Assembly: GCF_006345805.1 (NCBI RefSeq)
Contig: NC_043013.1
Location: forward strand, 15,314,001-15,378,000
From: Octopus sinensis
Taxonomy: Eukaryota
Reading direction: 5' to 3'
Length of the DNA: 64,000 bases
The notes beneath the pieces are model-generated. The model was not told where the DNA came from and made no database searches. It was given only the letters and a program-made list of their open reading frames with translations. Below are positions 21,708 to 62,512 of the stretch, one piece after another. Position numbers and translations under genes: made by a program. Every line of letters starts with the position of its first letter. The first letter of the stretch is position 1.

Positions 21708-21759
<52 letters not shown>

Positions 21760-28186: not shown

Positions 28187-28570
<384 letters not shown>

Positions 28571-29369: not shown

Positions 29370-30048
<679 letters not shown>

Positions 30049-40696: not shown

Positions 40697-40737
<41 letters not shown>

Positions 40738-40824
40738 GAAAGTTTACGAAAATAAACAAAAGACAAAGGCAGGTGGAGTACAAACAAACAAATGTATTAG
40801 TATAGCGCTCAGGAATAGAAAAAG

Positions 40825-40862
40825 TCTTTTACATTTCGAGCCTACACTCTTCGTCAGAAAGA
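40825..40862 (-). ncRNA. Minimal type I hammerhead ribozyme motif (Penelope-like-element type)
   Basis: TCTTT-CTGACGA-A-GAGT(GTAG)GCTC-GAAA-T-GTA-AAAGA: stem I TCTTT/AAAGA, intact core, GUA cleavage triplet. Confidence 0.6.
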
Positions 40863-40995
40863 TACACAGAAAAAAAACAAGGAGAGAAAAAAAATGTGTG
40901 TAGTAACTCACAATCTATCATATATATATATATATATATGCAATATTTTTTTCCCTCTGTCCTCCCACCTCGGGATCTTTCTTTCTCCTATGTTT

Positions 40996-41025
40996 CCGAC
41001 GAAGAGCTCCACTCGAAACGTCATA
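40996..41025 (+). ncRNA. Degenerate minimal hammerhead motif
   Basis: CCGACGA-A-GAG(CTCCA)CTC-GAAA-C-GTC with palindromic ACGT stem III; U4C core change and weak stem I. Confidence 0.4.
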
Positions 41026-42009
41026 CCCTCCTTCTTCCCTTCTTTCCTGAGCGCCCAATACTACTTATTTGTTCCACATCCTTGCGTTGTTGTCTTTTTG
41101 TTTTCTTGTTTGGATTAACTTTATATATATATATATATATATGCATGGATATACACTCACACATGTACATATGTATCATCATCATTATTTAATGCCTGTT
41201 GTGATGATGATAATACAAATATACGTATGTGTGTGTGTATATATATATATATGTAGAAACACTGCCAGACTAGACTGGAGCCTGGGGCAGTCCCGAGCTC
41301 CCCAGACCCCGGTCGAAACCGTCCAACCCGTGCTAGCGCGGAAAACGGACGTTAAATGATGATGATGATGATGATGATATATGATAAAGTTCTCAAAGCA
41401 TTTTCCATTTGTTTTTTAATATAAATTTACTCATGTGAAACCTCCTAACCTTTTCAGCATATGTATCTCACACACATACATAATGTATGTATATGTCTGT
41501 GTGGATTTGGTAGAAGATGGAAACTAAAAAAAAAACCTGTTGCATATATGTGTATGTGTGTATTTTTGTGTTTTCGTTTGTTTTTGGCTCTCCCTCGCAT
41601 GTGTATGTGTGCATTCCCTCTCACATGCACACGCACTCACGCACACACACACACTTTTGTCTCTGACAACATTAAGCCAAAGAGGTATTTCAAGTGAAAG
41701 ATGTCAACCGAATGACTAAAATATCTTGTTGTCGTAATGGTGTGAATCATGCTGTCTGTTATCTCATGATTGATTGTAAAATAGTCTACCACAGAATAAA
41801 TCTCGCATCAAGAGGAGGAGATAAGCTAAAACAAATGACGAGTAATCTTCATTTTGTACTTTGATAAAATGTAATCACATTTTGTTTTTTTTTTTGTTTG
41901 TAAGCATGACATGAGAGGTGACAGTGAAGGGTAGGAGAGTATGAGGAAGGAGTGCAAAAAACAATAATAAATGCAATGTAACATCACCCAACAACGATTC
42001 ACCTTCGCC

Positions 42010-42043
<34 letters not shown>

Positions 42044-42464
42044 TCATCAACAACATTGTTGTCATCTTTATCACCTTCACCATCATTATCGTCATTGTTA
42101 TGTTATCATCATCATCATCATTATCTCAGTACGTAGCTCTTGTGTTGTAGTAGAAACGTTAGCACGCCGGGCGAAATGCTTTGCGGTATTTCGTCTGCCA
42201 CTACGTTCTGAGTTCAAATTCCGCCGAGGTCATCCTTTCGGGGTCGATAAATTAAGTACCAGTTATGCACTGGGGTCGATATACTTGACTTAATCCATTT
42301 GACTGTCCTTGTTTGTCCCCTCTGTGTTTAGCCCCTTTTGGGTAGTAAAGAAATAGGTATTACTTTTACACTTTTTCTTGGTGGTGGTGTGGATGTCTAA
42401 TCCCAGTCTAAACCTCCTCGACCCAACCATGACAATCCTGTCTTTTTAGAGATGTCTAGGGCTA

Positions 42465-43545
42465 GCTTCAAGCATATAGTTTCCATCCGGATATTGTACG
42501 ATGGGTTGGTGCCTTCCTCTCAGATCGCTCCTTCCAAGTCCAAGTTAATGGTTCGCGGTCCGACGTCTCCAGTGCGAGCAGTGGTGTGCCTCAAGGTTCA
42601 GTGCTTGGGCCCTTGTTGTTCTTAGTCTTCATAAATGACTTGCCCGACGACCTCACGCAACACACCCTTCTATTTGCCGACGATATCAAACTGGTCGCTC
42701 CTCGCGGTAATATAGAGGATCTTCGTCGATGCCTCCACCAAATTTGGAAGTGGTCTAACGATTGGGACCTGTGTCTGAACGTGTCAAAGTGCTGTCATCT
42801 GCCTGTCGGCTCTACTCCTGCAACTCAACTTGATTTCGAGCCGGGTCGTCTGCTGCTGGAGAGGACCGATCAGGTAAAGGACCTAGGTATCTTGGTGGAT
42901 TCCTCCTTTTCGCCTTCGGCCCAGTGCGTCCATGCTGCCAACAAAGCACGCGGAATTCTGTTCTTGATTCGACGGTCATTCGGAATGCTCACAGCAGCCA
43001 TATTCCTACCACTCTATGTCACGCTGGTGAGACCCATATTGGAGTATGGGATTCAAGCCTCTTCTCCTTATCTCCTCAAAGACATACAGCATCTCGAAAG
43101 AGTCCAGAAGCTGGCTACCCGCATGGTTCATGGTCTCAAAAATTTGTCCTACGAAGAAAGGCTGAGGATGCTCGACCTTTATTCTCTTGAAAAACGTAGT
43201 GATCTCATTCTCGCCCACATCATAAGCGGAAAGTGTAACCTCTCGAAAGAGCTGTTCTTCACTCCTGCTCCAGAGCGTCGGCTGCGGGGTCATTCCGAAA
43301 AGCTCTACCTGCGACGATTTCATCTCAATCGAAGGAGAGGAGCTTTCTCCGTCCGGGTTGCGGATCCGTGGAACAAGCTGCCAGACGAGATGGTGAAGAT
43401 GCCGACGACCGCTTTGTTCAAAGCCTCTCTGGACCTCGAGTGGCCTGAACTCTTTACATAAACACCACCCTGTACTTAACTCCATGTCCCCCTACATGGC
43501 CTTGCTATTTGCTTTTGAGCCAAATTAACTAACTAACTAACTAAC
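42465..43545 (+). mobile_element. 5'-truncated CR1-type LINE with an open RT C-terminal frame
   Basis: Open frame 42466-43461: LQAYSF...SGVPQGSVLGPLLFLVFINDL...LFADD...RPILEY; (ACTA)n tail. Confidence 0.92.
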
Positions 43546-44231
43546 ATCTAATTTGTCCATCTATATTCAACATGGTTGCTATTTCCAGCAGATTGGGCTA
43601 TCCTCCGCAGGTTTCCTCATTGTTGTTGTTATTTGTTTTACCCCAGGTCAGTCTTATACAAGCAGTCCTATAATCAAAAGCATTCCAGCTGTGATTATCC
43701 TGGTTTTTTCCTTATGTGCAGGAAACTTAAGAGCACATTATCCAATATGTCCTTTTCTAATCTTGTAGGGAGTTATTTGAAGGCAGTTTTGCTACTACTT
43801 TCACCAGGTTGAGTGACCCTATAGAGGTTTCTTGGTGTTGCCAGTGGAGATATTGGTGTTTGACTGTGTTGGTACTGTATTGTTGTCATTTGCCTTGGAC
43901 ACAATTTGTGTGTGTGTGTGTGTGTGTGTGTCTGTCGTCCATCCATCCGTTTGTCCAAACAACACTTGCTAGCTAGCTTGTATGTTTGCATATGGGTAGG
44001 TGGGTGTGTATGTATATACATATACATGTATATATGTTTATGCATATGTATATACACATACACAAGTAAAAAAATTACAATGGAATGCAAATAATTGCTC
44101 TTCAAAAGTTTGTGAAGAAAGACTAAGACAAGATAGGTTTATTTGTTCTATTGCAGATAACCTTCAAGTTTCATTTGTGAAAGGTCCCTTTGATTTATTG
44201 AATAACTTCATTAATGTTTGGTTCATTTCAG

Positions 44232-44394
44232 ACACTGTTACCGCCTGTATACTGAAAGGCAGTATAAAGATGAAATGCTGGTCACTTCAGTTCCAGAGAT
44301 CCAAAGAACAAACTTGGCCAATGTTGTATTGCTTTTGAAATCCCTTGGGGTCCAAGATCTCTTGCAGTTTCATTTTATGGACCCACCTCCACAG
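44232..44394 (+). CDS. DHX38: DHX38 coding exon 18
   Basis: [16 protein letters not shown]...[19 protein letters not shown]...FMDPPPQ; tttcag/GTAAGC; phase 2 to 0. Confidence 0.96.
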
Positions 44395-45452
44395 GTAAGC
44401 TTAATTACACAATTATCGTTTCTCTGTGATTCTTACCTATCTTTTTCTTTTTGTTTTCAGACAAGAAGTATTCTTGAGAATGTAGAATAAGAATACATAC
44501 ATAAATGTACAATGTATCTGTTTTTTTATTACCCATAAGGGGCTAAACATAGAGGGGGCAAACAAGGACAGACAAACAGATTAAGTTGATTACATCGACC
44601 CCAGTGCGTAACTGGTACTTAATTTATCGACCCTGAAAGGATGAAAGGCAAAGTCAACCTCGGCGGAATTTGAACTCAGAACGTAATGGCAGACGAAATA
44701 CGGCTACACATTTCACCTGGCATGCTAACGATTCTGCCAGCTCGCTGCCTTATGTACAATGTACAATGTATCATCACTATTTAATGTCTCTGTTCCATGC
44801 TGGTATAGGTTGGAGAGTTTGGCAAGGATCCAGTGAGTGAAGGACTGCATTGACATGTCTGCCTTCCATGCTGGGATGGGTTGGCAAATAAAAAGCACCA
44901 ACCGATCGTGGTCATTGCCAGCCTCCTCTGGCCCCTGTGCTGATGGCACGTAAAAAAGCACCCACTACACTCATGGAGTGGTTGGCGTTAGGAAGGGCAT
45001 CCAGCTGTAGAAACATTGCCAGATAAGACTGGAGCCTGGTGCAGCCTCCTGGCTTCCCAGATCCCGGTCGAACCGTCCAACCCATGGTAGCATGGAAAAT
45101 GGACGTTAAACAATGATGATGATGATGATGATATATATATATCTATATGTATAGACACACACACATACATGCAATTTTCTTTTAGTTTCTATTTACCAAA
45201 TCCACTCACATCACTTTGGCTGACTCAAACCATGTGGTTAAGAGCCAAACTTCTTAATCATGCAGCCATACCTGCTGTGTTTGGTTATAGGTCTGCTGTT
45301 TTGAGGTTGATTTGCAGCTAGACAGCAAGAACAATGAAACACCACCTAATAACTCTTTTGTTATTAACATGCAACCATTCTTTTTGATAATTTATATTTG
45401 AAGTCTTGTGACATACTTTGTATCTTATTTGTGTGTCTCTCTCTTTCCACAG

Positions 45453-45617
45453 GACAATATACTGAATTCTATGTATCAGCTGTGGATTCTTGGTGCTCTA
45501 GACAACACAGGCATGCTTACACCGCTTGGCCGTCAAATGGTAGAATTTCCTTTAGATCCTGCCTTATCAAAAATGCTTATAATTTCAATGGAGATGGAAT
45601 GTAGTGCTGAAATTCTT
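45453..45617 (+). CDS. DHX38: DHX38 coding exon 19 (last one found in the window)
   Basis: [20 protein letters not shown]...[12 protein letters not shown]...AEIL; cacag/GTAAGT; phase 0. The 19 exons total 2997 nt (999 codons). Confidence 0.96.
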
Positions 45618-47331
45618 GTAAGTACTCAAATTACTTATTTATCTTTTATGCTGCTGCTGCTGTTGTTGATGTTGTTGTTATTAGTATTATTAAGGTGGCA
45701 AGCTGGCAGAATCATTAGTGTGCTGGACAAAATACTTTGCGATATTTTGTCCATCTTTATGTTCTGGGTTCAAATTCTGCTGAGGTCAAATTTACATTTC
45801 ATCCTTTCAGGGTCAATAAAATAAGCACCAGTCAAGTACTTGACTTCTGCCTCCCGTCAAAAACTGTTGGCCCTATGCCAAAATTTGAAACCATTATCAT
45901 CTGTAATAATAAATGCCAAAACGAATTTCTGTGTGTCAGTATGTCACACTTTGACCCCCTCTCTCACTATTCAATGACACTGCTACTATTCCTCATGTTG
46001 GAGCGAGAGTAATAGTAGACATAGAGACAGTGTGGGCAGTAGTAGATTGATAGTTGAGATGGTAATGGGATGATAGTAATAGTATGAGCTGTGATAGGGG
46101 TGGAGGCGACAGTGATGATGGTGATGGTGATGGTAGCTGAGGTGGTCAAGCATGACGGTGATAGTAAGGGATATGAAAGACAGTGATGATGGTGGTGGAG
46201 GGGAGGAAGGCAGTGAAGTCAAAGTCGTTGATGATGGTGGTGGTGTCAGAAGTCTGAATGGTGTGTGTATGGCAGTTGTGATGTTGGTGGTGTTACTGAT
46301 GATGGTAATGGTTGAATGCAATCAATAGAAAGAGAGAGATTATACAAAAAATAAAAATTGTCTTAATGTCCTAAGTTCAAATGCTGTCAAGGTTGATTTT
46401 GCCTCTCACCCTTTCAGGGTCAAAATTTCAGGTCTTTTACCTATAGCAGAAAGGTTTATTATTATTAAGTTGATGAAAGGCAGCAAGATGGCAGAATCAT
46501 TAGCACGCCAGGTGAAATACTTAGCGGCATTTTCTCTGTCTTTACATTCTGAGTTCAAATACAGCCAAGGCCGGCTTTGCCTTTTGTCCTTTTGGGGTTG
46601 ATAAAAATAAGTACCAGTCAAGCACTGGGATCAATGTAATTGACTAGTCCTTCTCCCAAAGTTTCAGGCCTTGTGCCTATAGTAGAAAGGATCGTTATTA
46701 AGTTGATGAGCTGACAGATTTGTTAATGTGTCAGACAAAATGCTTAGCAACATTCTTCCAGCTCTTTGCATTCTGAGTTCAAATTTTGCTGAAGTAAATT
46801 TTGTCTTTCATCCTTCCAGGGTCAATAAAATAAGTACCAGTTGAGGATTAGGGTCGATGTAATCGACTAACCCCCAACTCTTCCCAAATTTCAGACCTTG
46901 TGCCTATATCAGAAAGGATTATTGTTATTATTAAAGTGGTGAACTGGCAAAATCTTTAGCACATAGGATTAAATGCTAAACAACCTTTTTTTTTTTTTTT
47001 GGCTCTTTATGTTCTGAGTTCAAACACCACTGTGGTTGACTTTGCTTTCCATCCTTTCATTGTTGATAAAATAAAATATCAGTTGAACTCTGGAGTCGAT
47101 GGAATTGATTTACCTCCTTCCCCGAAAATTGCAGGCCTTTTACTGAAATTTGAAATCATTATTTGTTGTACTCTAAAATTTTGTCATAGTTGAACTTCTA
47201 CATTATTTACATTGAAGGTGATTTGGCCGAGTGGTTAGAGTCTTGGATAGAATACCTCGTGGTATTTATTCTGAATCTTTGCACCCCAAGTTCAATTCCC
47301 ACAGAGATCAACTTTGCTGTCCATCCTTTAA

Positions 47332-47550
47332 CCTTTTAGTATTTAAACTGGCCATTTCTGACTTAAATATTCTCCCTGTTTTATGTTCAAACTGGCCAGG
47401 TTTGGCCACTCACACCTACCCAACAATGTCATTCTATAGAAAATTATCACATCATCTGTTGCTCAAAACTATGAGATAATGTATGATTAAGTCAAAACAA
47501 TGTGAATAAATCAGCGTTACATTTGACAAAATTATCTGAATGCTAAAGGG
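47332..47550. mobile_element. TTAA-type (piggyBac-like) MITE, same family as 52756-52976
   Basis: TTAA|CCTTTTAGTATT ... GAATGCTAAAGGG; inverted copy of the 52.8-kb element. Confidence 0.65.
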
Positions 47551-48361
47551 ATAAGGACCCCTCTCCCACCCTGGGTGGGGGAGGGTCCTTATAAGATTTT
47601 GTTGCTAAAATGTATGTGCATTAAGTTGGTTATACTTCTATAATACACAAAATATTAAAAAATTTTTTTTTTTTATAATTCCTAAGATTATTTAATTACA
47701 AAAATATAATGTGATTTTTTAAACATTGAATGGCTTGGACAATCCATCTGAAGGAAATAGGAATCAAAGAGGTCTATAGGTAAAAAATGGTTGAGAACCA
47801 TGGCTTTAAGGGTTTGATAAAATAATGTAACAGTCCAGTGGCAGTGGATTGGTAGAACTTTGGGGTCAGATACCTTGTAGCGTTTGTTCAGCCTTTTTGT
47901 GTTTTGAGTTCAAATCCTACTACGACCTACTTGGAGTATGAAACTTAATTTGTCATCCAGCTTACTTGATGACATAGTCCTTGGGTGCCTTTAGCAGGGT
48001 CCCTTCCATTGCAAGCATTCAGGTTAGATCTCTGATTTAAAGATAACTCCCTCACTCCTGCTTGTCTTGAAGGTCTTGCCTTGCTCCTGTTGATTAGAAG
48101 ATAAAAATAATGTATGAAAAAATATGAAAATAAACAAAATTTAAAAGGAATTTTTTTATTTTTAGATTTATTATTAATTTTTTTTCTGTGGTAAAATTCT
48201 TCCTTAAATGTTCCAATGTAATCTTTTAGCATTCAAAAATGCTGAGTTCTGTTATAAAGATTGTGAATTTTGTTCGAACTGGTTTTTTTACGACCTTTTT
48301 CAATAGGTCACCCTGTATTGCATCCAACCACTCTCTGTTTTAAATATTCAGTAAATCACAT

Positions 48362-48367
48362 TTTATT
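48362..48367 (-). other. Candidate AATAAA polyadenylation signal of the nested gene
   Basis: AATAAA on the minus strand about 210 nt past the stop codon; AT-rich context, so chance occurrence is likely. Confidence 0.3.
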
Positions 48368-48576
48368 TTATCATTTCATCATGAATGCATCAATTTAATC
48401 TAACACCAGTCAATATCATGAAATGAAGAGGAAGGAGACCTTAGACAAGACTCTCTACTCTATATGAATACATTGTTTTTACATTTGACATTGTTAGTAT
48501 TATGTATGGTGAAAGTTTAAACAGAAACAGTTTTTGTTTTCAGTATCCACCAATGTTCTGACATAAAAGAAAATAT

Positions 48577-50247
48577 TTATAGATATGTAAGTTGGTTATT
48601 GTTAGGATTTTCTGGAATTTCTACACTAGTTTGAGGTAGTTTCTCTACATTTTCATATTGTGAGTTTAATTTATCATTATCCGACTGAAACCCTTGATTG
48701 TGATTTCCTTGTGGTGCTGCCAGTTTAGCTGGTACCTTCTTGTCATTAGTTTGCTGAAGATCAGATTTCTGTACTGGTTTTGTAATGGTCTGCATATTGC
48801 TGTTTAGTCTATGGTAGTTCCGATCTTTACATGTGACATAAATTAATCCAAAAACACAAGGTATCAATGCTAATAACCCTGCCACAATTCCTGTTATAAT
48901 GTTTGCATCCTTCATGAAAACACTGATACATTTTTTTGAAATGACGTCGTCGTCTCTGTCCAGAGCGTTGACACATATGTGGTACGTGACAAATGCGGAG
49001 TCAGTATCAAACGAATATTCATGTTCGTATTTCAGTGTAATGTCCTCTAACTGATTTTCTGACGAGTCTTTGATTGAAACATGGAACTGATTCACTATCA
49101 AACTTGTCATCCACTTAATTCTCACCCGGCCTTTCTCAATTTCGGTGCTAACATTCAAATTGGAAGAAGCATCAGAGTTGATATTTGGATTCCAGTTGTT
49201 ACAAGTTTGGGGCTTGCAATTTAATTCCAAACTATTAATGAGTGCTTTGTCTATCTCTTCGCTGGAATTCCTGCAGGTCTTGATGTGAACTGAAGAACCA
49301 TACATGTTTATAATTGAATTCAAATGACAGTTACAAAGCAGAGAATTATGCTCAAGGTTTAAATTTTGGATGTCTTTTAGATTTTGGAATTTGCACTGAT
49401 CAATTTCCTGTAGTGAACAGTTACTCAAGTCGAAGTTTATCAAATGGTACGGCAAACGGAGAGAGTTTATAGATTTTGTTATATTGTTTCCTTGTAGAGA
49501 AAAATCTTTCAATGATAAAAGTTGAATGAAAGCATCTGACGAAATCTCAGTCAGTTTATTATGACTGAGGTCAAGTTCATTAAGGTTTAACGGGACTTCA
49601 CTGAACATGTTTTTTGATAGGGCTTGGATTAAATTTTCAGACAGATCCAAACTGTTGAGCTTAGAAAGGGACAAGGGGCCATAAATTGTTTGAATTTGAT
49701 TTTTTGATAAATTCAAACTTGAAAGATTTTTTAGATTGCTAAATGTTTCCAGTTTGATCTGTTTTAATTTGTTATTAGACAAGTCCAGTATTTCCAGATT
49801 TGGAGAATCCTGGAAAAGGCTGTCAGAAAGTTCCTGTATTTGGTTATTTTGTAGATGTAGATGTAGGCTGTTTGTTACTATTGGCTTGGTTAGATAAATA
49901 ATTCCATTGGAACTGATATCTAGTGTTTGCCATTTTGGGTAGCTGAGTAAACTGTAAGGAAAATCTAACAACTTGTTGTTGGATACATTTAGTCCTTGAA
50001 GATTGGGCATCGACCCGAGGTTGATAAGTATGGAATCATTTTGGTTTTGATTGAAATTTAGTTGCAGCATATTGTTGTTAGTAATTGAAATAGAGGAAAT
50101 ATTATTATATGACAGTTGAAAGAAGGTGACATTGCTGTAGGTACAGTTGAAGCAGTTCAAGTTGATAGAGTCTGGTGAATAATTCAAAGCATACGATGTT
50201 AATGTAGCACCAAACAGCCAAGTAACAATCAGTAAATGTTGCAACAT
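48577..50247 (-). CDS. Nested single-coding-exon LRR + FN3-like type I transmembrane protein (FLRT/LRRN4/vasorin-like architecture), 556 aa
   Basis: Uninterrupted 1.67-kb ORF. ATG at 50247 follows a T-tract plus CAGCAG acceptor. Signal peptide MLQHLLIVTWLFGATLTSYA, about 12 LxxLxLxxN repeats, HNSLLCNC LRRCT, FN3-like RIKW...YHICV...C, TM at 48829-48900, 83-aa tail. Confidence 0.9.
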   Translation of the reverse strand: MLQHLLIVTWLFGATLTSYALNYSPDSINLNCFNCTYSNVTFFQLSYNNISSISITNNNMLQLNFNQNQNDSILINLGSMPNLQGLNVSNNKLLDFPYSLLSYPKWQTLDISSNGIIYLTKPIVTNSLHLHLQNNQIQELSDSLFQDSPNLEILDLSNNKLKQIKLETFSNLKNLSSLNLSKNQIQTIYGPLSLSKLNSLDLSENLIQALSKNMFSEVPLNLNELDLSHNKLTEISSDAFIQLLSLKDFSLQGNNITKSINSLRLPYHLINFDLSNCSLQEIDQCKFQNLKDIQNLNLEHNSLLCNCHLNSIINMYGSSVHIKTCRNSSEEIDKALINSLELNCKPQTCNNWNPNINSDASSNLNVSTEIEKGRVRIKWMTSLIVNQFHVSIKDSSENQLEDITLKYEHEYSFDTDSAFVTYHICVNALDRDDDVISKKCISVFMKDANIITGIVAGLLALIPCVFGLIYVTCKDRNYHRLNSNMQTITKPVQKSDLQQTNDKKVPAKLAAPQGNHNQGFQSDNDKLNSQYENVEKLPQTSVEIPENPNNNQLTYL

Positions 50248-52755
50248 TTTTCTGTAGAATGGTATCTGCTGGAAAAAAAAAAAAATCAAATTAGTTGAAA
50301 AATAATATACAGTTATATGAATTGAAGAGCAGAATGAAATAAGTGGAGCAAGAGCACACACAAAGATGAAAAGTGTTATCGAAGAGGTCACAGGTGTGTG
50401 ACGAAAGATTTCCGGACAATGGACATGAATTACAATAAGAACACAATAAGAACAAATATATAGTGCATGAGTTTATTTGGCAAAAAACATATGCAATATA
50501 TATAAACCAATTTCAATGGATTTCACCCAAATTTGATGTCAATATTACTTAGTTTGGTTTGAAATAAAACTTGATTAGCTTAATAATCGTAACTTAATCC
50601 TGGGCAAGGCTGGGTTATACTGCTAGTATATATATATATATTACTTGTTTCACTTATTTGACTGCAACTATGCTGGAGTGCCACCTTTAGTTGAACAAAT
50701 TGACCCTAGGACTTATTCTTTGCAAGCCTAGTACTTATTCTATCGGTTTCTTTTGCTGAACCGCTAAGTTATGGGGACATAAACAAACCAAGATCGGTTG
50801 TCAAGCGATGGTGCGGGGACAAACACAGAAACAAATACACAAATATATACATTATAACTATTGCCAGAAACACTTCTGGCCTTTATTACTTTACCATTCC
50901 TTTTGTGTTTTGTAGCTTTAATACAACTCACATGTCCCTTGTACAGTTGATAATCCTTGGTAGCTTCTAAATGCCCCTCATTAGATATATTGAGTAAGGA
51001 GGGTCTGAAATTGTCCAAGCATGTACAAGCCCTTAATTAGTCTTCTCTGTATAGCTAACATCACTATCAGTGATTGCGTGGAATATTTGCATTGAGGAAC
51101 CAAATCTTATAACTGGCACCTGGCCGTTGCCAGTGCTGCTGGACTGACTCCTGTGCAGGTGGCAAGTAAAGAAACACTTGTTTCGACCCTGTGCTTGAGG
51201 AGACCTATTGAGTCAAGTACATCAACATCAAAAATCAATGGAAATTGTAGTTGTGATCCCTGTGCCGGTGGCACGTAAAAAGTACCATCTGAATGTGGCC
51301 GATGCCAGTGCCGGTGGCACGTAAAATGCGCCAACCAATCGTGGCTGTTGCCAGCCTCGCCTGGCACCTGTGCTGGTGGCACGTAAAAAGCACCCACTAC
51401 ACTCACGGAGTGGTTGGCGTTAGGAAGGGCATCCAACTGTAGAAACACTGCCAGATCAGACTGGAGCCTAGTGCAGCCTCCTGGCTTCTCAGACCCCGGT
51501 CGAACCGTCCAACCCATGCTAGCATGGAAAAACAGACGTTAAATGATGAGGATGATGATAAATAAATCAAAGTAAGCAATAAGGATTTAAATCAGTCAAC
51601 AACACTAAGTCTTTTTACTTTTCTTTCTCTAGTGTTGATCCATTATTACTTTCACTATTCCAATATTTTTTTGTTTGTTTGTTAGAAATTGGTGTTTTAT
51701 TCAGTGAAGCTTGTGGTTGTGTTTCAATTTTCAGTTAATATAGCCATTAAAAATGAACACTAGCAACAGTGATTTAAAAATCAGTGATCAAGCTGAAATT
51801 TAGCGTTTGTTTTTAAACAAGAATTTTGTAAAGGAAAAAGGGAAAACAGCCCACCAAGAAAAATTGGTGAACAGAAGAATTATGTTTTAAGAATGTCAGA
51901 CAGCATTGGACAAGTGTTATATAAAATCAAGTGTTATCATTAGGTAGACACATGCTTTACATAGATTTATTAATCTAGATATGAATACATAATATATGTT
52001 GGTTGGTAACATAAGATCAAGTTGGCAAGAAAAGGATTAAACTACTTTCTTTGAGCCTTTATTTCACCCCAAGACCTCAAACTAGATTTATGTAACATGT
52101 GACTAATGCAGACAACTTTTTACATTTTTCATATCACAACAGGTGTTCTACAAAAGCAAATTTATTAAATAACCCACCACTGTCTTCAAATCGCTCTTAA
52201 CACACATTCTCATTTTTATTAAATGGAAATTTACTACGCTTGAGAAACTTTTGTAACTAATTCCAACTACCCATTTTCTTATTGTATAGTAACGATACTT
52301 GATTATTGGCTCCTATGTACACCTTCATCATCATCATCATCATCGTTTAATGTCCGCTTTCCATGCTAGCATGGGTTGGACGATTTTGACTGAGGGCTGG
52401 TGAACCAGATAGCTGCACCTGGCTCCAATCTCGATCTGGCAGAGTTTCTACAGCTGGATGCCCTTCCTAACGCCAACCACTCCAAGAGCGTAGTGGGTGC
52501 TTTTATGTGCCACTGGCACGGGCCCAGTCAGGTGGTACTGGCAATGACCTCGCTCGAATCTTTTTACACATGCCACCGGCACAGGTGCCAATAAGACAAC
52601 ACTGGTAACGATCACACTTGATTGGTGCCTTTTATGTTAGTACATTTCTGTAATTGGAAGATTTAAATCTAGTTAAGTGTTTCAGATCAGTCTGTATTGT
52701 CCTCTTTTTTTTTTTAGTTATGTGCATAATCAGGTCAATTTGTGACTTAGATTAA

Positions 52756-52976
52756 CATTTTAGCATTCAAATTACTTTGTTAAATGTAATGTTTGTTTAT
52801 TTATGTTGTTTTGAATTAATCATGCATTATCTCATGAATTCAAGATTTTGATGATGTGACTGTTCATTTTTAGAATGGCATTGTAGGTAAGTGTGAGAGG
52901 TTCAATCTGGCCAGTTTGAATATAAAACAGGTAGAATATTTGGGTTGGATATATAGCTGGTTTAAATGCTAAAGGG
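52756..52976. mobile_element. TTAA-flanked (piggyBac-like) MITE
   Basis: TTAA|CATTTTAGCATT ... AATGCTAAAGGG|TTAA; a partial copy lies near 54765-54852. Confidence 0.7.
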
Positions 52977-54519
52977 TTAACTTATATCCACACCAGCGGT
53001 GAGCTGGCAGAGACATTAGCACGCCGGGCGAAATGCTTAACAGTATTTCGTCTGTCGTTACGTTCTGAGCTCAAATTCCACCGAGGTCGACTTTGCCTTT
53101 CATCCTTTCAGGGTCGATAAATTAAGTACCAGTTACGCACTGGGGTCGATGTAATCGACTTAATCCCTTTGTCTGTCCTTGTTTGTCCCTTCTATGTTTA
53201 GCCCCTTGTGGGTAGTAAAGGAAAAAAAAATATCCAAACCATGTAGGTATGGCTGTGTGGCTTGCTTCCCAGCCATGTGGTCTCAAGTTCAGTTCCACTG
53301 TGTAGCACCTTAGGCAAATATCTTCTACAACAGCCCTCGGATTAACCAAAGCATTCCAAGCGGGTTTGAGAAACCCATCATGTATATGTATATATATGTG
53401 TGTGTGTGTTTGTGTGTACCCTTGTCTTGACATCATGTAATAATTGCAAATGCACATCAGTATCATACAAGGGCTTTTCACTTCCAGTCTTTCATGCAAA
53501 ACATCTCAGGTAATGAGGAAATATTGCCATGCTTGGAAACAGGTGAGGGTTGGTGACAGGAAGGGCGTCCAACCACAAAAAAAGTCTACCTCAGTGAATT
53601 CCATCTAATCCATGCAATCATAGAAGAGTGGATGTTAAATGATGATGATGATGATTGTATATATGGCTGTCGGGTTATAAAGTTCACTTTGGAACCATGT
53701 GGCTTAAGAGTTAATTCTCAGTATGTTGATACTATCAACTGCTATCTTTTATTGTAGCTGTGAGTTGACCAGTGCCGTGTGAGTGAAATTTATTAGATAG
53801 AAACAAGAAGAAGCCTTTCATATATTTATACACACACACACACTTTATAAATATATGTTCATTTAATGTTTGCTTTTCCATATTAGCATGGAATGGGTTA
53901 ATTACTTGAGGTAGTATTTTATGGCCAGACTAACTCGTTTCAGATTAGAGGCATGCATGTGCGTGTTTGTGTATTTCCTTTGTCTTGACTTGTACGTGCT
54001 GACTGTAAACAAAGGTCAGTTAAAATCACTGTCATTTGTTTACAATCCTCCATGAAATTATGTCTCACCAATGAGCCATTTGTTGTTCAAAAGATGAGGA
54101 AATATCCACCCTGAATGGAGCACCAGTCTTTTACAACGTTACTCATTTTTTTAGCTCAGTGGAATGGAACAACATGAAATGAAGTGTTTTGTCCAAGAAC
54201 ACAATGCACTACCTGGTATGGGAATTGAAACCATGATTTTTGTGCTCATGAGTGCAATCCCCTAACCACTAGGCCACGCGTCTTCACTCAAATTTGTTTA
54301 TTGTAATTTTATTTTACCTTCAAGCACAAAGTTTATAAAAGAAATAGTTAACGATAATACAAAACACACTTGTACATTTAAAGAACACTTTAAAACAGGG
54401 GGGAAATTATCAAGCGGACAAATGTATGTTATAGTTAATAAAAATATGTGCACGAAACATATGACATGTATATACTATTGTGCACATAAACATATGTGTG
54501 TGTATAGATATACAATATG

Positions 54520-54581
54520 CATACATATATACACACACACACACACATATACATATTTACATACATATATATATGTGTGTG

Positions 54582-54652
<71 letters not shown>
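54520..54652. repeat. (TA)n/(CA)n microsatellite (representative of many)
   Basis: Long TA tract; similar tracts at 16868-16961, 21711-21756, 55914-55953, 56193-56253 and 56830-57010. Confidence 0.95.
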
Positions 54653-54655
<3 letters not shown>

Positions 54656-55911
54656 CAGATGAATATGGTACTTAAGTTAAAGGCACCAGAATTTGGTATG
54701 GTATTATCCATATAAATCAAATGGGGTGATTATAATCAAAATAAGCAACAAGGATTTGAAATCTCAAAGCTATGAGATAATGCAGGATTAATTTAAAACA
54801 ATGTAAATAAATAAGCATTACATTTGACAGAATAATGTGAATGCTAAAGGGCTGTATAAGAAACTTTTTTGACAGGAGTTGATCTTAATATGTGTTTCTG
54901 GAGACAGCTGTATTTATATAGTTAAGACGTGGTTGTTTTAATAAAAGTCTTTAGACAGGAGGTAATGGTCTTCTTATGTAGTTCTGGATGCGTATGGTTG
55001 AAGACAACTGCATAAACTAAGTGCTGAGCTCTAATTGTGAAGGGTACCTATGGAAGGGGTAGATCTAGGAAGATGTAGGATGGAGTTGTGAGAAAAGAAC
55101 TTTGGACACTGGACCTCACTGAGGAAATGACAAGGGACTGGGAGATGTGGGGATTTGCTGTACTTGAAAAGGTGTGTCAAGTAAAATTGGTGTCTTCCAT
55201 ATGTACAGGCTTGTCCTTTCAGATGCTGATGTCACATAAAAAGCACCTGTGCTAGTGCTGCGTAAATGCACCCATGCCAGTGCTACTTAAATGCACCTGT
55301 GCCAGTGCTGTGCAAATGCACTCGTGCCACTGGCACATAAAGGGTACCCCACATACTATTAAGTGGCTGGCATTAAGAATGGCATCCATGCCACAACAGA
55401 CAGTTGGAGTTTGGACAGTTCCCAGCTGGCCAGCTTCATCTGAAACTGTCCAACCTTTGCCAGCATGGAAAGCTGACATTAAATAAGGATGATGGTATAT
55501 GTATATATAAGGCGGCGAGCTGGCAGAATCATTAGCACTCTGGGCGAAATGCTCAGCGGTATTTCGTCTGCCACTACGTTCTGAGGTCAAATTCCGCCGA
55601 GGTCGACTTTGCCTTTCATCCTTTCGGGGTCGCAGTTACGCACTGGGGTCGATATACTCGACTTAATCCGTCTGTCTGTCCTTGTTTGTCCTCCCTGTGT
55701 TTAGCCCCTTGTGGGTAGTAAAGAAATAGAAATAGGTATATGTATATATAGGCACAGGCATGGCTGTGTGGTAAGAAGCTTGCTTCCCACCCACTGGGTT
55801 CTGGGTTAGGTCCCATTGTGTGGTGCCTTACACAAGTGTCTTCTACAGTAGCTTTGGGCTGACCAAAGCCTTGTGAGTGGATTTGGTAGATGGAAACTGA
55901 AAGAAGCTTGT

Positions 55912-55958
<47 letters not shown>

Positions 55959-56189
55959 ATATATTTATGTGTGAGTGTCTTTCTGTCTGTGTTACCCCAG
56001 CATTGTTTGATAACTGATGTTGGTGTGTTTATGTTCCCTTCAATCTAGCAGTTCAGATAAAGACACTGATAGAATAAGTACCAGGCTTACAATGAATAAG
56101 TCCTGGGGTTGATTTATTCAGCATAAATTCTTTAAGGTGGTGCTCTAGCATGGTCGCAGTCAAATGACTGAAACAAGTAAAAGAATAGA

Positions 56190-56251
<62 letters not shown>

Positions 56252-56255
<4 letters not shown>

Positions 56256-56523
56256 ATCAAAATAAAAACATGATGCGAAGGATTCAGCGGTACATATGTT
56301 TCGGGCCTTTATTAGACAGATTTATAACAATGCATAATGTATGTCTGTGGCCTTCTTCAGCCGCGCACAACAGCTTCCACAAGGACATGTCCTTGTGGAA
56401 GCTGTTGTGCGCGGCTGAAGAAGGCCACAGACATACATTATGCATTGTTATAAATCTGTCTAATAAAGGCCCGAAACATATGTACCGCTGAATCCTTCGC
56501 ATCATGTTTTTATTTTGATCAAT
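56252..56523. repeat. Perfect spacerless 272-bp palindrome
   Basis: The two 136-bp arms are exact reverse complements about the centre aaggaca|tgtcctt (56387/56388). The ORF track gives identical 73-aa peptides on both strands. Confidence 0.97.
56411..56488 (+). ncRNA. Type I hammerhead ribozyme motif (mirror copy on the minus strand at 56287-56364)
   Basis: GCGG-CTGAAGA-A-GGCC...GGCCC-GAA-ACATATGT-A-CCGC: stem I GCGG/CCGC, palindromic stem III, GUA triplet at 56482-56484. Confidence 0.65.
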
Positions 56524-56590
56524 TTACTCCACCACCTACACCACCAAACGGTATACACAGGTGCTTATAATTATCAAGTACTCACCCCGA

Positions 56591-56645
<55 letters not shown>

Positions 56646-56825
56646 CACACATATATACAATGGGTTTCTTTCAGTTTCTGTCAATGAAATCCACTTACAA
56701 GGTTCTGGTTGGCCTGAGGCTATAGTAGAAACAATTGCCCAATGTACTATACAGTGGGAGTGAACCCGGAATCATGTGGTTGGGAAGCAAGCCTCTTACC
56801 ATACAGTTAATATACCTGTGCGTTT

Positions 56826-56943
<118 letters not shown>

Positions 56944-56949
56944 TGTATT

Positions 56950-57004
<55 letters not shown>

Positions 57005-57287
57005 GCATGCATATATAGACCACACATACACATATATATGTATACATACATACACCCCACCCATAAATATATGTAAATTTGATTCGGTCTTTGAAAAGAA
57101 AGAGATTAACTCAGTTTAAGAACTATGCTGGGATGTTTATTGGGAAAATAAACATTGGTTCTCAAAAGTAGGTGAATAGAAAATTGTTAAAGAAACCTCA
57201 CCACTACTACAATGAATTTAAAGTACACATTCCTATTATGTAATATACCCGACATCAGATAGTTGTAATAACAAGGATGATGGTAAC

Positions 57288-57322
<35 letters not shown>

Positions 57323-60300
57323 AATAATAATGATAATAATAATAATAATAATACTGTGTAAAAGGAGAACAAGAACAATCACAACAACAACAACAACAAC
57401 AATAGGCTGTGTTCCTGACAGGATTACCTCACAAATGTCAATACTGAAATGACAAAACACTCTAAAGATATTCTCATATTTTACTTTCATGAGTTCTCGG
57501 TTAAAGAGTGAAAATATTTAAATAAATAAAAAGTAAAAAAAAAAAAAATAGATAGAAATGAAATAAAAGATATTTTCTGTGTGGATAAAGCAACAATAGA
57601 GTGTGGTGGAGAATATTATTATTATTATTATTTTTTTTTTCTTTTTATCGTTTTATTCTGTGTAAACTCCCACACTTTATATCTGTCTTGTTGTCTGTCC
57701 CCACTCATCTTTCACCCTGGTGGCAAATAAAAATAATCATCATCATCATCATCATCATTATTATTAGCATTCTGGGAAAAATTCTTAGCAGCATTTTGTC
57801 CAGTTTTACATTCTGAATTTAAATTCTGCCAAGACCAACTTTGCTCTTCGTCCTTTCGGTGGGTCAGTGAAATAAGTACCAGTTGCATGCTGGGATTGAT
57901 GTAATTGATTATGCCTCTCCGTCCAAAATTTCAGGCCCTGTTTCCTATTGTAGAAAAGATTAGGCGGCAAGCTGGCAGAAACGTTAGCACACCGGGCGAA
58001 ATGCGTAGTCGTATTTTGTCTGCCATTACGTTCTGAGTTCAAATTCCGCCGAGGTTGACTTTGTCTTTCATTCTTTCAGGGTCGATAAATTAAGTACCAG
58101 TTATGCACTGGTGTCAATATAATCGACTTAATCCGTTTGTCTGTCCTTGTTTGTCCTCTCTGTGTTTAGCCCCTTGTGGGTAGTAAAGAAATAGGTATTT
58201 CTCCCATCGCTATGTTCTGAGTTCAAATTCCGCCGAGGTTGACTTTGCCTTTCACTCTTTCGGGGTCGATAAAATAAGTACCAATTGTGTACTTAGGTCG
58301 ATGTAATTGACTGTCCCCACTCTCCCAAATTTCAGGCCTTGTACCTATAGTAGAAAGTATTATTATTATTATTATTATTATTTGGTGGTGAGTTGGCATT
58401 AGTGCATTGGACAAAATGCTTGGCTGCATTTCTTCAGATTCTTTACATTCTGGGTTCAAATTCTGCTGAGGTCAACTTGACTTTCATCCTTTTGGTGGGG
58501 TTGATAAAATAAGTGGCATTGAGCACTGGGGTCGATATAATTTGTTGCTAAGTTTGTGCCAGAATTTAAAATTTATTTTTGCTATTAGATAGCGAGTTGG
58601 CAAGAATCATGAATGCATCAGCCAACATTTTCTGTGGCACTTCTTTTGGCTCTATGTTCTGAGTTCAAATCTCACTGGCATCAGGTTCGGCTTTCATCCT
58701 TTTGGGAGTGGTAAAATAAAATACTAGTCAAATACTGGGATTGATGTAGTTGATTTTTCCCTCCCCTCGAAATTAGAGTTACATCACAACCATATGTGTA
58801 TGACATGGTGATCTCATATCAAGATAAACTATGCATGACCTTGCAAGTGGGATCCAGTTAGAATTTTCTTCAGGTCAAGTAGCTCATCCCACTCAAAAGG
58901 TCTACGAACAAAACACCCATGTTTCCTGAGGTGAATTATTCTGCCGAGGTCAGTTTTGCCTTTCATCTTTTTGAAGTTGATAAAATAAGTACCAGTTGAG
59001 CATGAGTCAATCTAATCGACTTATCCTCTCCCCTCAACATTGCTGGCCTTGTGACAAAATTTGAAACTGTTATCATCATCATCATCATCATTATTATTAT
59101 TATTATTAGGCATGCCCTTGTAGATTGAAGTACAACAGTTGGGTGAGGGCCCATGCCTTTGGTGGTCAGGGTGATCCTGGTTCTGTAGGTTTCATCGATT
59201 GGTCTTTGTTGGAGGTTCTCCTGTATCTGGAGAATTGCATCATTCATGTATTCACATATTTTGTATATTATGTTTACTTTTTATTTCATCTCTGCACCCC
59301 CTCTTCCCCCCCTATCTTTTATGTAACCCTCCACACAAATTATAAACTGTCCCTGTAATGATCCTCTCTCCTGATGCTACTATGACAAACAAAAGAAACT
59401 GTTATTATTATTATTCATTTGCATTGTTTATTTGCTTAAGTTACTATCAGGTTTATTACAAAAGTTATGATGTGTAGTTGTGACTTGAATGTCACAGAAT
59501 TATGTATGCATGAAACCTGAAGGCAAAACATCACAGATATAACCTTGTAACAGGGTCAGTACAATAATGTAAAAATAAATAGTCAGTACATCTGTTCATC
59601 GTGTTAATACACTGTTTCACAGGATGTGGTTATGTCTCTTTAATTTCTGAGTTGGAAGGCGGCGAGCTGGCAGAAACGTTAGCATGCCGGGCAAAATGCT
59701 GCGTAGCCGTATTTCGTCTGCCATTACATTCTGAGTTCAAATTCTGCCAAGGTCGACTTTGACTTCATCCTTTCAGGGTCAATAAATTAAGTACCAGTTA
59801 CGCACTGGGGTCGATGTAATCGACTTAATCCCTTTGTCTGTCCTTGTTTGTCCCCTCTGTGTTTAGCCCCTTGTGGGTAGTAAAGAAATAGGTATTTCGT
59901 CTGCCGCTACGTTCTGAGTTCAAATTCCGCCGAGGTCGATTTTGCCTTTCATCCTTTCGGGGTCGATAAATTAAGTACCAGTTACGCACTGGGGTCGATG
60001 TAATCGACTTAATCCCTTTGTCTGTCCTTGTTTGTCCCCTCTGTGTTTAGCCCCTTGTGGGTAGTAAAGAAATATATTTTCTGAGTTCAAATTCACCACA
60101 ATGACTAACTTTGCCACGGCCACGATTGGTTGGTGCTTTTTACACGCCACCGGCACAAGGGTCAGAGGAGACTGGCAAATGGCCACGATCGGTTGGTGCT
60201 TTTACGTGTCTCCGACACGGATGCCAGTCAGGCAGCGCTGGCATCTGCCACGTTCAGACGGTGCGACATTATTCCACAGTGAGTAATCTCAAGCAATCTG

Positions 60301-61206: not shown

Positions 61207-61240
<34 letters not shown>

Positions 61241-62473: not shown

Positions 62474-62512
<39 letters not shown>

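Follow-up and report, generated by a model that had tools for sequence, protein, structure and literature searches.

What is a 556-aa reading frame doing on the opposite strand of an octopus intron? Is it a gene, how long has it been in this place, and what might its protein do? The window analysed here is the whole 64,000-nucleotide stretch of the Octopus sinensis genome that contains this frame and part of its host gene, DHX38. We answer these questions with sequence comparison and structure prediction.

The host gene and its intron

The host is PRP16/DHX38, the gene of an essential splicing helicase: it scores 552 bits against human PRP16 and 400 bits against DHX8. The annotated host gene covers the whole locus, and its HA2_C and OB domains are not encoded in the window. 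Three features of the host frame the nested gene:

13899..45617, forward strand: 5' part of DHX38, N-terminus (MANLSFIDDESIHRLEG...) through HA2 exon, by sequence comparison
45453..45617, forward strand: DHX38/PRP16 exon just before the nested gene, with its orthologue in the same place in the other eight species
45618..64000, forward strand: DHX38 host intron, longer than 18.4 kb and running past the window end

Helicase-motif exons lie near 25406, 28304, 29848, 31701, 34243, 36465 and 44263 on the forward strand. The host intron, which is in phase 0, begins with the donor gtaagt at 45618. No DHX38 exon is present downstream of 45617 in the window; the next exon (IVSMLSVP...) lies beyond it. 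A preliminary description of the locus had proposed antisense nesting in a DHX38 intron, and this proposal holds: the gene is on the reverse strand, the exon at 45453-45617 is on the forward strand and the bit scores identify the host as PRP16.

The nested gene

The nested gene has the following parts:

48577..50247, reverse strand: complete CDS of an LRR-FN3-TM protein, 556 aa plus TAA stop, single coding exon
50269..50287, reverse strand: candidate 3' splice acceptor (poly-pyrimidine tract plus AG, from sequence), 22 nt upstream of the ATG
48362..48367, reverse strand: candidate poly(A) signal AATAAA, predicted from sequence, about 210 nt past the stop

The enclosing open reading frame spans 48577..50391 on the reverse strand. 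Its first ATG, at 50247, gives 556 aa plus stop, and the alignment shows that this start methionine is common to the orthologues. The annotation of O. sinensis assembly GCA_006345805.1 contains an identical protein. We estimate the chance of a 604-codon open frame at about 33% GC to be near 1e-20 per frame position. Hence the ORF of the nested gene is not a chance ORF. The ORF list, the first ATG and the annotated protein all agree with the intact 556-aa single-exon CDS that had been described.

Although the CDS is a single exon, the gene probably has an intron in its 5'UTR. Such an intron is implied by the acceptor-like poly-T tract followed by 'cag' before the ATG. The putative acceptor is retained in another Octopus species (on a related contig), and so is the AATAAA candidate. 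Four 2.6-kb Logan contigs that encode an 87%-identical protein were considered as mRNA and rejected: they continue collinear with genomic DNA through the putative acceptor and finish in a repeat, and are thus genomic. An Rfam scan of the whole window matched no RNA family.

Selection and divergence

Between O. sinensis and Octopus bimaculoides omega is 0.46, with an excess of synonymous changes (p = 0.0015). Between Octopus and Argonauta it is 0.17. Both values from this dN/dS check, which the preliminary description had suggested, are below neutral. At least nine mollusc species from three classes have an intact nested ORF of comparable length, and the amino-acid identity of the intact orthologues ranges from 23% to 51% (51% within octopods, 23% to Haliotis). 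These comparisons indicate that the nested gene is real and under purifying selection. Conservation at short range says little, because in the two Octopus species the CDS (95.2% nucleotide identity) is barely above its intronic flanks (about 94%).

In the same two species omega is near 1 across the N-terminal 80 residues. The slowest segment is the TM helix with the juxtamembrane region, where pN is 0.13 versus 0.24-0.42 elsewhere (Octopus vs Argonauta). Fast evolution of the ectodomain would fit an immune receptor as well.

Nesting across molluscs

The gene in the window (48577-50247) lies antisense in the DHX38 intron that follows the exon at 45453-45617. Eight further species from three classes carry a homologue antisense just past the same DHX38 exon, in the same phase-0 intron. 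Besides O. sinensis, nested copies are found in two cephalopods (O. bimaculoides and Argonauta), four gastropods (Haliotis, Gigantopelta, Littorina and Biomphalaria) and two bivalves (Potamilus and Solemya). The DHX38 sequences of Solemya and Biomphalaria are fragments of 550 aa or less. Both flanking DHX38 exons are seen around the nested gene in O. bimaculoides and Haliotis. Across the nine species, the 3' end of the nested gene is 1.9-9.1 kb away from the upstream DHX38 donor.

Counterparts in the same intron of snails and clams mean that the arrangement is ancient and not cephalopod-specific. The comparison indicates that nesting in one phase-0 DHX38 intron predates the divergence of cephalopods, gastropods and bivalves. 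By our own dating, it is older than the Cambrian split of these three classes. The gene had been called possibly cephalopod-specific, a suggestion that fails, with the same FN3-TM module present across gastropods and bivalves. Its nesting had been called independently derived. This stands relative to the vertebrate pairs LRRTM/CTNNA and FLRT/MACROD, which have other hosts, but not within molluscs, where the nesting is inherited. Synteny in bivalves had been put forward as a check, and the antisense gene is indeed found in the same intron of Potamilus and Solemya.

Lottia is the exception. Its homologue has no DHX38 exon within 10 kb; apparently the arrangement was lost but the gene was kept. 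In a neighbour-joining tree with long terminal and short internal branches, the Lottia copy groups with the nested genes of Haliotis and Gigantopelta, a weak indication that it may be their kin. Another homologue (P0003, 34% identical) has no DHX38 exon within 10 kb either, but cephalopod introns can be much longer. Our survey of the DHX38-LRR pairing is confined to Mollusca. Neither the O. bimaculoides accession nor 'nested gene' together with DHX38 gave any match in the literature.

What was an orphan cephalopod ORF now belongs to a defined set of orthologues whose genomic address is fixed. The address in DHX38 is a reliable synteny marker with which a fast-evolving receptor can be traced across Mollusca.

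Protein architecture

From the N-terminus to the C-terminus, the protein is organised as follows:

50191..50247, reverse strand: likely signal peptide, residues 1 to about 19, predicted from the hydrophobic N-terminus MLQHLLIVTWLFGATLTSY
49348..50130, reverse strand: LRR solenoid of about 12 repeats, residues about 40-300 (Pfam, AlphaFold2, motif list)
49201..49347, reverse strand: LRRCT-type cysteine cap, residues 301-349 (C305, C307, C325, C344, C349)
48910..49170, reverse strand: FN3-fold beta-sandwich, residues about 360-446, with W379 and the pair C425/C440 conserved
48832..48900, reverse strand: TM helix, residues 450-472 (Kyte-Doolittle), with the signature G-I-V-A-G-L-L-A-L-I-P-C-V...Y-V-T-C-K-D
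48580..48831, reverse strand: cytoplasmic tail, residues 473-556, 84 aa, predicted disordered (low pLDDT)

The N-terminus MLQHLLIVTWLFGATLTSYA is hydrophobic, and the segment is conserved in the orthologues. Taken as a signal peptide, it would give the protein a type I topology together with the one TM segment that Kyte-Doolittle finds, at about residues 450-472. The last residues of the tail, T-Y-L (48580-48588), look like a class I PDZ ligand.

Pfam matches only LRR_8, LRR_4 and LRR_1 (LRR_8 with E 2.3e-29). A Pfam search of the octopus protein finds no TIR (E up to 1), no Ig and no fn3. AlphaFold2 predicts 11-12 LRR strands from residue 52 to 323, short and regularly spaced, with a pLDDT of 85-95. 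Twelve N-x-S/T sequons are present, all N-terminal to the TM segment and 10 of them inside the LRR solenoid. The cap follows the pattern C305-x-C307...C325...C344/C349, in a region where model confidence is low. A family profile gives weak matches (E 0.1-0.3) to the LRRCTs of Slit (Slit2) and LGI1 in the PDB, and 'LRRCT domain-containing protein' is the UniProt name of the O. bimaculoides orthologue. In having an LRR array with a C-terminal cysteine cap, the protein agrees with the architecture of the FLRT/ELFN class.

A single FN3 domain between the LRRs and the membrane is recognised by fold, but not at the Pfam sequence threshold. A second, domain-level model of this region has seven strands with a pLDDT of 85-97. 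With this model, Foldseek finds classical FN3 domains at target TM-scores of 0.63-0.76 (Lar FN5, fibronectin FN10 and FN11, tenascin, Tencon). With the whole-protein model, it finds generic LRR matches only. Among relatives, Pfam fn3 matches weakly in three of 29, and it rises above threshold in more distant profile matches.

The preliminary description had listed a signal peptide, about 12 LRRs, an LRRCT, an FN3-like domain, one TM segment and no TIR, as well as about a dozen sequons. Pfam, AlphaFold2 and Foldseek bear out the domains, and the count of sequons is right. Structure prediction, which it had recommended, recovers both the LRR solenoid and the seven-strand FN3 fold.

A mollusc family with an FN3-TM module

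To what family does the protein belong? An exhaustive search with the C-terminal FN3-TM profile returns 103 proteins, and all matches with a named source are molluscs. The family TM motif, GI(L/M/V)AGxxFLxPC(I/V/L), is near-invariant: it occurs in 62 of 68 family members, but in none of the 115 control LRR proteins. Of the 68 members, 56 end in a hydrophobic residue (26 of the 115 controls), and half of the long forms (16/32) have a class I PDZ-type end, versus 6/115 controls. Among the nested copies, the C-terminus was read in eight, of which seven end in [S/T]-x-[L/F]. Not all family members have the PDZ-type end: the Biomphalaria copy terminates in ...KQQT.

We define the family signature as G-[ILVM]-x-[AGS]-G-x(3-5)-[LIVFM]-x-P-C with a juxtamembrane aromatic-x(2-5)-K/R-D/E after it, and place it downstream of an FN3-like domain with a conserved W and two Cys. 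In the window protein the signature reads GIVAGLLALIPCV...YVTCKD. The module is found in the LRR-bearing nested gene and in many short FN3-TM paralogues. These matches indicate that the octopus gene is a member of a family without a characterised member, defined here by its FN3-TM module. That no orthologue could be assigned at the outset agrees with this result: there is no characterised orthologue, and the named profile matches are all molluscan. The family may be relevant to the wiring of the cephalopod nervous system.

Comparison with known systems

FLRT1-3 are the closest architectural match. They share with the octopus protein a signal peptide, about 10-12 capped LRRs, one FN3 domain, one TM segment, a short tail and a single coding exon. 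FLRT1 and FLRT3 are themselves nested antisense, in introns of MACROD1 and MACROD2. However, these hosts differ from DHX38, and FLRT proteins have a full four-Cys LRRNT, whereas the octopus protein has only two N-terminal Cys. To our knowledge, neither the mollusc TM signature nor the [S/T]-x-[L/F] end is an FLRT feature. None of the 60 best PDB sequence matches is an FLRT chain; the matches are generic LRR proteins. Orthology to the FLRT family proper is rejected: we find no FLRT-specific similarity, and in the PDB the C-terminal profile yields only weak LRRCT matches.

ELFN1/2 have the same order of LRR, LRRCT, FN3 and TM. Distant profile relatives match the Pfam family Fn3_ELFN with E 2.3e-4 and 8.9e-4, and one short family member does so with 0.058, but all these scores are below the Pfam cut-off. 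The octopus protein gives no Fn3_ELFN match, and orthology is unsupported. ELFN tails are several hundred residues long, compared to 84 aa here.

LRRTM1-3 are nested in CTNNA2/1/3, each antisense to its host within a large intron that is conserved, and most of the other nested genes identified in the same study have LRR domains (Uvarov et al. 2014, PMC3933685). LRRTM proteins, too, are type I membrane proteins with LRRs, encoded antisense in a host intron; their C-terminus binds PDZ domains, as the octopus tail may. Yet they have no FN3 domain and are confined to vertebrates, where their nesting arose early; host, lineage and nested gene all differ. LRRTM membership (ten LRRs leading straight to the TM) is rejected: an FN3 domain is present, and the LRRTM2 match (E about 3e-18) is generic to LRRs. 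With the octopus gene, the frequent occurrence of LRR genes among opposite-strand nested genes is no longer an observation from vertebrates alone.

TIMP in synapsin is the classic antisense nested pair; it has persisted across great evolutionary distances, and its place in the host protein is conserved (PMC2825198; Pohar et al. 1999). Its genes are unrelated to ours and the pair is pan-metazoan, whereas our evidence for the DHX38-LRR pair comes from Mollusca only. DHX38-LRR is a new deeply conserved host-guest pair beside the few known (SYN-TIMP, CTNNA-LRRTM).

Receptors of the TLR/RP105 type share an LRR ectodomain and a single TM segment with the octopus protein, but the latter has no TIR, only about 12 LRRs, an FN3 stalk and a PDZ-type tail. 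Toll-like receptor identity is rejected, given no Pfam TIR at E up to 1 and an 84-aa tail that is predicted to be disordered. LRIG and LRRN are names that pipelines gave to the copies of Haliotis, Gigantopelta and O. bimaculoides. Neither identity holds: Pfam finds no Ig, and the models show one beta-sandwich, which is FN3-like. The annotation names TLR, LRIG, LRRN3 and internalin are each rejected because Pfam does not find their defining domains.

Proposed function and alternatives

We propose that the locus is a maintained type I glycoprotein gene with an ancient nesting in DHX38, that it encodes a scaffold-anchored adhesion or organiser receptor, and that it is passively retained. We give this reading a probability of roughly 0.55. 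By analogy, the protein is best read as a receptor that would work like LRRTM, SALM, ELFN or FLRT, while belonging to none of the FLRT, ELFN and LRRTM families. Its anatomy suggests how. The curved ectodomain of about 12 LRRs with its LRRCT cap would bind an extracellular protein partner, and the single FN3 domain would serve as a stalk. The unusually conserved TM helix, with its small-xx-small-small face (G-x-x-A-G) and a Pro-Cys in mid-membrane, may associate laterally with copies of itself or with a membrane protein partner. The tail is short and disordered, without a catalytic or TIR domain, and its [S/T]-x-[L/F] end could dock to PDZ scaffold proteins. Removing a compact gene from within an essential gene's intron is difficult without damage to the host; hence passive entrapment would be the most economical explanation for the retained nesting. 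The conserved TM helix and the PDZ-type tail are cheap, direct experimental handles on a class of mollusc surface proteins without known function.

Could the protein instead be an innate-immune LRR receptor or decoy? It would then be a TIR-less, TLR-like protein that, in the manner of RP105/CD180, detects microbial or danger ligands and signals via a partner recruited through the TM helix. A conserved TM helix without a signalling domain suits such a co-receptor, and the fast-diverging ectodomain, whose first 80 residues have an omega near 1 in the Octopus pair, points the same way. TLR3, TLR13 and an insect Toll-type protein rank among the top matches at the LRR level, and the Argonauta copy is automatically named 'toll-like receptor 6'. 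But these matches reflect generic LRR similarity (IGFALS, LGR4, LRRC15 and GARP score equally), and Pfam finds no TIR domain. The immune LRR families of molluscs are expanded and rearranging, whereas this gene is apparently single-copy and has kept its genomic position for hundreds of millions of years. Its PDZ-ligand-type tail is typical of junctional or synaptic proteins. We consider an immune role unlikely, and favour an adhesion or organiser function on the basis of the PDZ-ligand-like C-terminus and the single-copy, conserved synteny. An apical role, organising extracellular matrix or epithelium like the extracellular-LRR-only proteins of C. elegans (LET-4) instead of mediating neuronal adhesion, seems quite improbable to us. 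The Littorina orthologue is automatically named 'let-4-like', the sequence holds no neuron-specific pointer, and apical junction scaffolds would accommodate an LRR protein with a single TM, a short tail and a PDZ-type end. The name, however, stems from generic LRR similarity, and LET-4-type proteins have, as far as we know, neither an FN3 domain nor the TM signature of the mollusc family.

The arrangement itself may be under selection, if antisense transcription or shared chromatin tunes the expression or splicing of DHX38, or the reverse. The same intron, orientation and short distance (1.9-9.1 kb) in nine species of three classes would fit such coupling. Yet nested pairs can be kept for long without proven coupling, as in TIMP/synapsin (PMC2825198) and LRRTM/alpha-catenin (PMC3933685). 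Lottia seems to keep the gene but not the arrangement, and Rfam shows no structured RNA in the window. We regard coupling as improbable. We give just as little weight to a broader proposal, in which the FN3-TM-juxtamembrane module with its near-invariant GILAGxxFLxPC helix is the functional core of a mollusc-specific receptor superfamily, acting as obligate intramembrane partner or auxiliary subunit for a second, conserved membrane protein, and in which, in addition, the nesting is selected for coupled expression and not passively kept. That the ORF is non-functional or decaying, for example a retrocopy stranded in the intron, is close to refuted. A single coding exon inside an intron would suit decay, as would omega of 0.46 and a CDS only marginally above its flanks in the Octopus pair. 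Against it stand intact ORFs of similar length in at least nine mollusc species from three classes, omega of 0.17 over the octopod distance, and conserved Cys, Trp and TM residues that are strongly kept; a chance 556-codon ORF in DNA of 33% GC is effectively impossible.

The nested gene also has a practical side. In some assemblies, automated gene models of DHX38 are apparently broken by it at the host intron.

The host gene and its nested receptor gene

The gene for the 556-aa leucine-rich repeat (LRR) receptor lies antisense within a much larger gene, which sequence scores identify as DHX38, since the joined host exons reach 552 bits against human PRP16/DHX38 and 400 bits against DHX8. The Octopus sinensis annotation has the identical 556-aa protein on chromosome CM016875.1 (GCA_006345805.1). 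Its annotated host gene, on the opposite strand, codes for 1252 aa with the domains DEAD, Helicase_C, HA2 and OB. Annotation and exon scores thus bear out the antisense nesting in a DHX38 intron proposed in the preliminary description. The relevant features of the window are:

13863-14270 (+), DHX38 N-terminus (MANLSFIDDESIHRLEG...), start at about 13.9 kb
about 17.9-21.2 kb, RS/RD-rich N-terminal DHX38 exons
about 25.4-45.6 kb (+), exons with the helicase motifs
45453-45617, final DHX38 exon in the window, followed by the donor gtaagt
48577-50247 (-), coding sequence of the LRR receptor
50269-50287 (-), poly-T tract then AG just upstream of the ATG, a candidate splice acceptor

Because the DHX38 N-terminus is found in the window, the window covers exon 1 through the HA2 exon, and the whole gene exceeds 50 kb. 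The following DHX38 exon is absent from the 64,000-nt window. The host intron thus exceeds 18.4 kb. The LRR gene has its 3′ end 3 kb inside it.

An upstream DHX38 intron carries a LINE-like insertion, in which a 331-aa ORF (42466-43458, +) encodes part of a reverse transcriptase (Pfam RVT_1, E 5.7e-15). A dispersed repeat of about 60 nt and SINE-like appearance occurs at 20447-20507, 25660-25720, 46708-46754 and 59656-59719. Four Logan contigs (L011-L014) encoding a close relative of the receptor terminate in this same repeat and are therefore genomic sequences, not transcripts.

The nesting is shared across molluscs

A lookup of encoding loci places a homologue antisense within the DHX38 gene model, or directly downstream of it, in eight further species: Octopus bimaculoides, Argonauta hians, Haliotis asinina, Gigantopelta aegis, Littorina saxatilis, Potamilus streckersoni (a freshwater mussel), Solemya velum (a protobranch bivalve) and Biomphalaria glabrata (a pulmonate snail). 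In every case tblastn finds the DHX38 exon ending '...LDPALSKM(L/V)I(I/V)Sx(E/D/Q)(M/L)xC(S/I)A(E/D)x(L)' at a distance of 1.9-9.1 kb from the nested gene's 3′ end. The next DHX38 exon ('IVSMLSVPAIFYRPKGREE...') is found on the far side of the nested gene in O. bimaculoides and Haliotis. The phase-0 intron, the orientation and the relative position are identical in nine species from three molluscan classes. Judging by these genomes, the gene was already fixed in this single DHX38 intron before the split of the three classes and has stayed there.

The gene had been suggested to be possibly cephalopod-specific, with independently derived nesting. It is not a cephalopod invention, as homologues are nested in gastropods and bivalves too. 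The preliminary description had named a clear orthologue of a characterised gene, with the nesting conserved, as grounds against novelty. The nesting is conserved but none of the orthologues is characterised, so that the novelty moves from a cephalopod invention to a mollusc family. A literature search for the O. bimaculoides orthologue, and for a nested gene together with DHX38, returned no publication.

At two loci the arrangement was not seen. Around the Lottia homologue P0125 (Lottia gigantea KB203598.1, 5467-27461), no DHX38 exon turned up within 10 kb, and no host model spans the gene. P0125 joins the nested Haliotis and Gigantopelta genes in a rough neighbour-joining tree, which suggests that the nesting was lost secondarily in Lottia, or that the assembly is at fault. 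There is likewise no DHX38 exon within 10 kb of the gene for P0003 (ENA ERZ21867824 ctg119146l, 110944-132656), a distance that cephalopod introns can far exceed. This homologue has 570 aa and a single exon, shares 34-36% identity with the octopod proteins and groups with the cephalopod copies, so that it could be a squid or Nautilus orthologue.

A receptor family with a distinctive transmembrane module

A word-index homology search recovered few full-length relatives of the octopus protein: P0002 from the Logan contigs of another Octopus species (87% identity), P0003 from an ENA assembly (34%) and two Haliotis proteins at NCBI, auto-named 'LRIG2' (25-27%). The Haliotis proteins align over the full length, including the post-LRR domain, the transmembrane (TM) helix and the final residue. 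The O. bimaculoides orthologue is XP_014783182.1; automatic names here include 'internalin I', 'LRRN3-like' and 'LRRCT domain-containing protein'.

With a profile running from the LRRCT cap to the C-terminus, an exhaustive search of 1.84 billion representative proteins matched 103, of which 67 have an E of 1e-10 or better. The same profile gave zero matches in a word-indexed search, and indexed negatives do not mean absence. Source names were looked up for 20 of the 103 matches. Thirteen carry a name and all 13 are molluscs (Argonauta, Bulinus, Gigantopelta, Lottia, Littorina, Nucella, Elysia, Plakobranchus, Mya, Dreissena and Potamilus), as are the Haliotis and Octopus members named beforehand. 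The receptor family is uncharacterised, has to date been seen in molluscs only, and has a distinctive TM module.

The module (FN3-like domain, TM helix and juxtamembrane segment) is common to two architectures, LRR-FN3-TM (550-980 aa) and a short signal-peptide-FN3-TM form (260-360 aa). Its TM helix is nearly invariant, G-I-(L/M/V)-A-G-x-x-F-L-x-P-C-(I/V/L) followed by Y-x-x-x-K-D, a signature present in 62/68 family members and 0/115 other LRR proteins. One Trp and two Cys (C425, C440) of the FN3-like domain are kept across the family. The C-terminus is hydrophobic in 56/68 members versus 26/115 controls. Of eight nested copies read to the C-terminus, seven end in [S/T]-x-[L/F] (TYL, TYL, TNF, TKL, TRL, TNF, SKL), the exception being Biomphalaria with KQQT; P0003 ends in S-T-H-L (THL).

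Many short proteins lack LRRs and share the TM signature (P0131-P0180, bivalves among their sources). They have acidic tails, often ending in [IV]-x-[KR]-L or G-T-x-L, with named examples from Mya arenaria and Dreissena polymorpha. A Bulinus truncatus protein (P0123, 806 aa) contains the module at residues 69-192 and again at 515-754. Each of the two aligns to the sole Biomphalaria copy (L015, 25476-26252), and the doubling is due either to tandem duplication or to fusion of gene models.

Domains and reading frame of the octopus protein

The ORF list gives a single long ORF at 48577..50391 (-), whose first ATG at 50247 opens the 556-aa protein; the alignment shows the same start methionine in the orthologues. 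The coding sequence is a single exon, but the candidate splice acceptor ahead of the ATG leads us to infer that the gene probably has a 5′UTR intron.

Pfam matches LRR families alone (LRR_8 at E 2.3e-29, LRR_4 and LRR_1), and no TIR, Ig or fn3. Scripted scans find one strongly hydrophobic segment at about residues 450-472, a hydrophobic N-terminus, 12 N-x-S/T sequons that all lie N-terminal to the hydrophobic segment, and the cysteine pattern expected for an LRRCT cap (C305-x-C307...C325...C344/C349). A first AlphaFold2 model of the whole protein, from a five-sequence alignment, has an LRR solenoid of 11-12 repeat strands (pLDDT 85-95), then a seven-strand beta-sandwich (residues 364-444), the TM helix and a tail without order. 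When residues 350-556 were modelled again with 28 relatives, sandwich and helix rose to pLDDT 85-97. Foldseek matched this domain model to classical FN3 domains in the PDB (target TM-scores 0.63-0.76), namely Drosophila Lar FN5, fibronectin FN10, FN11 and FN14, tenascin, Tencon and the NCAM FN3. Weaker profile matches are LRR proteins with fn3 above the Pfam threshold and sub-threshold Fn3_ELFN, which links the module with LRR-FN3 receptors of the ordinary kind. The predicted sandwich, read as FN3-like in the preliminary description, is thus FN3 by fold and transitive homology, not by a Pfam-threshold match. The other elements observed there (ORF, LRRs, LRRCT pattern, sequons, single TM, no TIR) hold in Pfam, scripts and models.

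By architecture, the nearest known families are FLRT and ELFN; by nesting and PDZ-binding tail combined, it is LRRTM, which unlike the nested protein has no FN3 domain. The nested gene belongs to none of the three, and no similarity specific to them was detected among PDB sequence matches for the octopus protein or the family profile. Toll-like receptors require a TIR domain, and LRIG and LRRN require Ig domains; Pfam finds neither in the nested protein, and these identities are rejected. The database names of orthologues (internalin I, TLR6, LRIG2, LRRN3-like, let-4-like) are artefacts that arise from LRR similarity of a generic kind.

Selection

Between O. sinensis and O. bimaculoides (92% amino acid identity) dS is 0.086, dN 0.040 and omega 0.46, with an excess of synonymous changes (binomial p = 0.0015). 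The coding sequence of this pair is 95.2% identical in nucleotides, hardly more than its flanks (about 94%), so that the argument for constraint rests on deep comparisons. Against Argonauta (51% amino acid identity) dS is saturated, dN is 0.36 and omega about 0.17. TM and juxtamembrane segments change least (pN 0.13, Octopus versus Argonauta), tail and N-terminal cap most.

Possible function and persistence of the nesting

The protein has type I topology, the order LRR-LRRCT-FN3-TM, a strongly conserved TM helix and a recurrent PDZ-ligand-type end, and it has neither a catalytic domain nor a TIR domain. The concave LRR face would bind an extracellular protein, with the FN3 domain as a spacer. 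Within the TM helix, the G-x-x-A-G face and the mid-membrane Pro-Cys may mediate a specific lateral association, and the C-terminus would dock PDZ scaffolds. Together these steps point to a scaffold-anchored adhesion or organiser receptor, like the LRRTMs, SALMs and NGLs at vertebrate synapses. The nested protein might instead be a TIR-less immune receptor, which we consider unlikely, or an apical-matrix organiser, to which we give even lower odds than that.

Passive entrapment within an essential gene would be the default explanation for the persistent nesting. Its precedents are SYN-TIMP (PMC2825198) and CTNNA-LRRTM (PMC3933685), and the authors of the latter report LRR domains in most other nested genes they identified. 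Coupled regulation of the two genes is conceivable but unsupported.

The nested gene also appears to disrupt automated annotation of its host. The DHX38 models of Solemya (L010, 10001-24640) and Biomphalaria (L015, 10001-18927) stop exactly at the exon before the nested gene, leaving 'partial' proteins of 324 aa and 405 aa.
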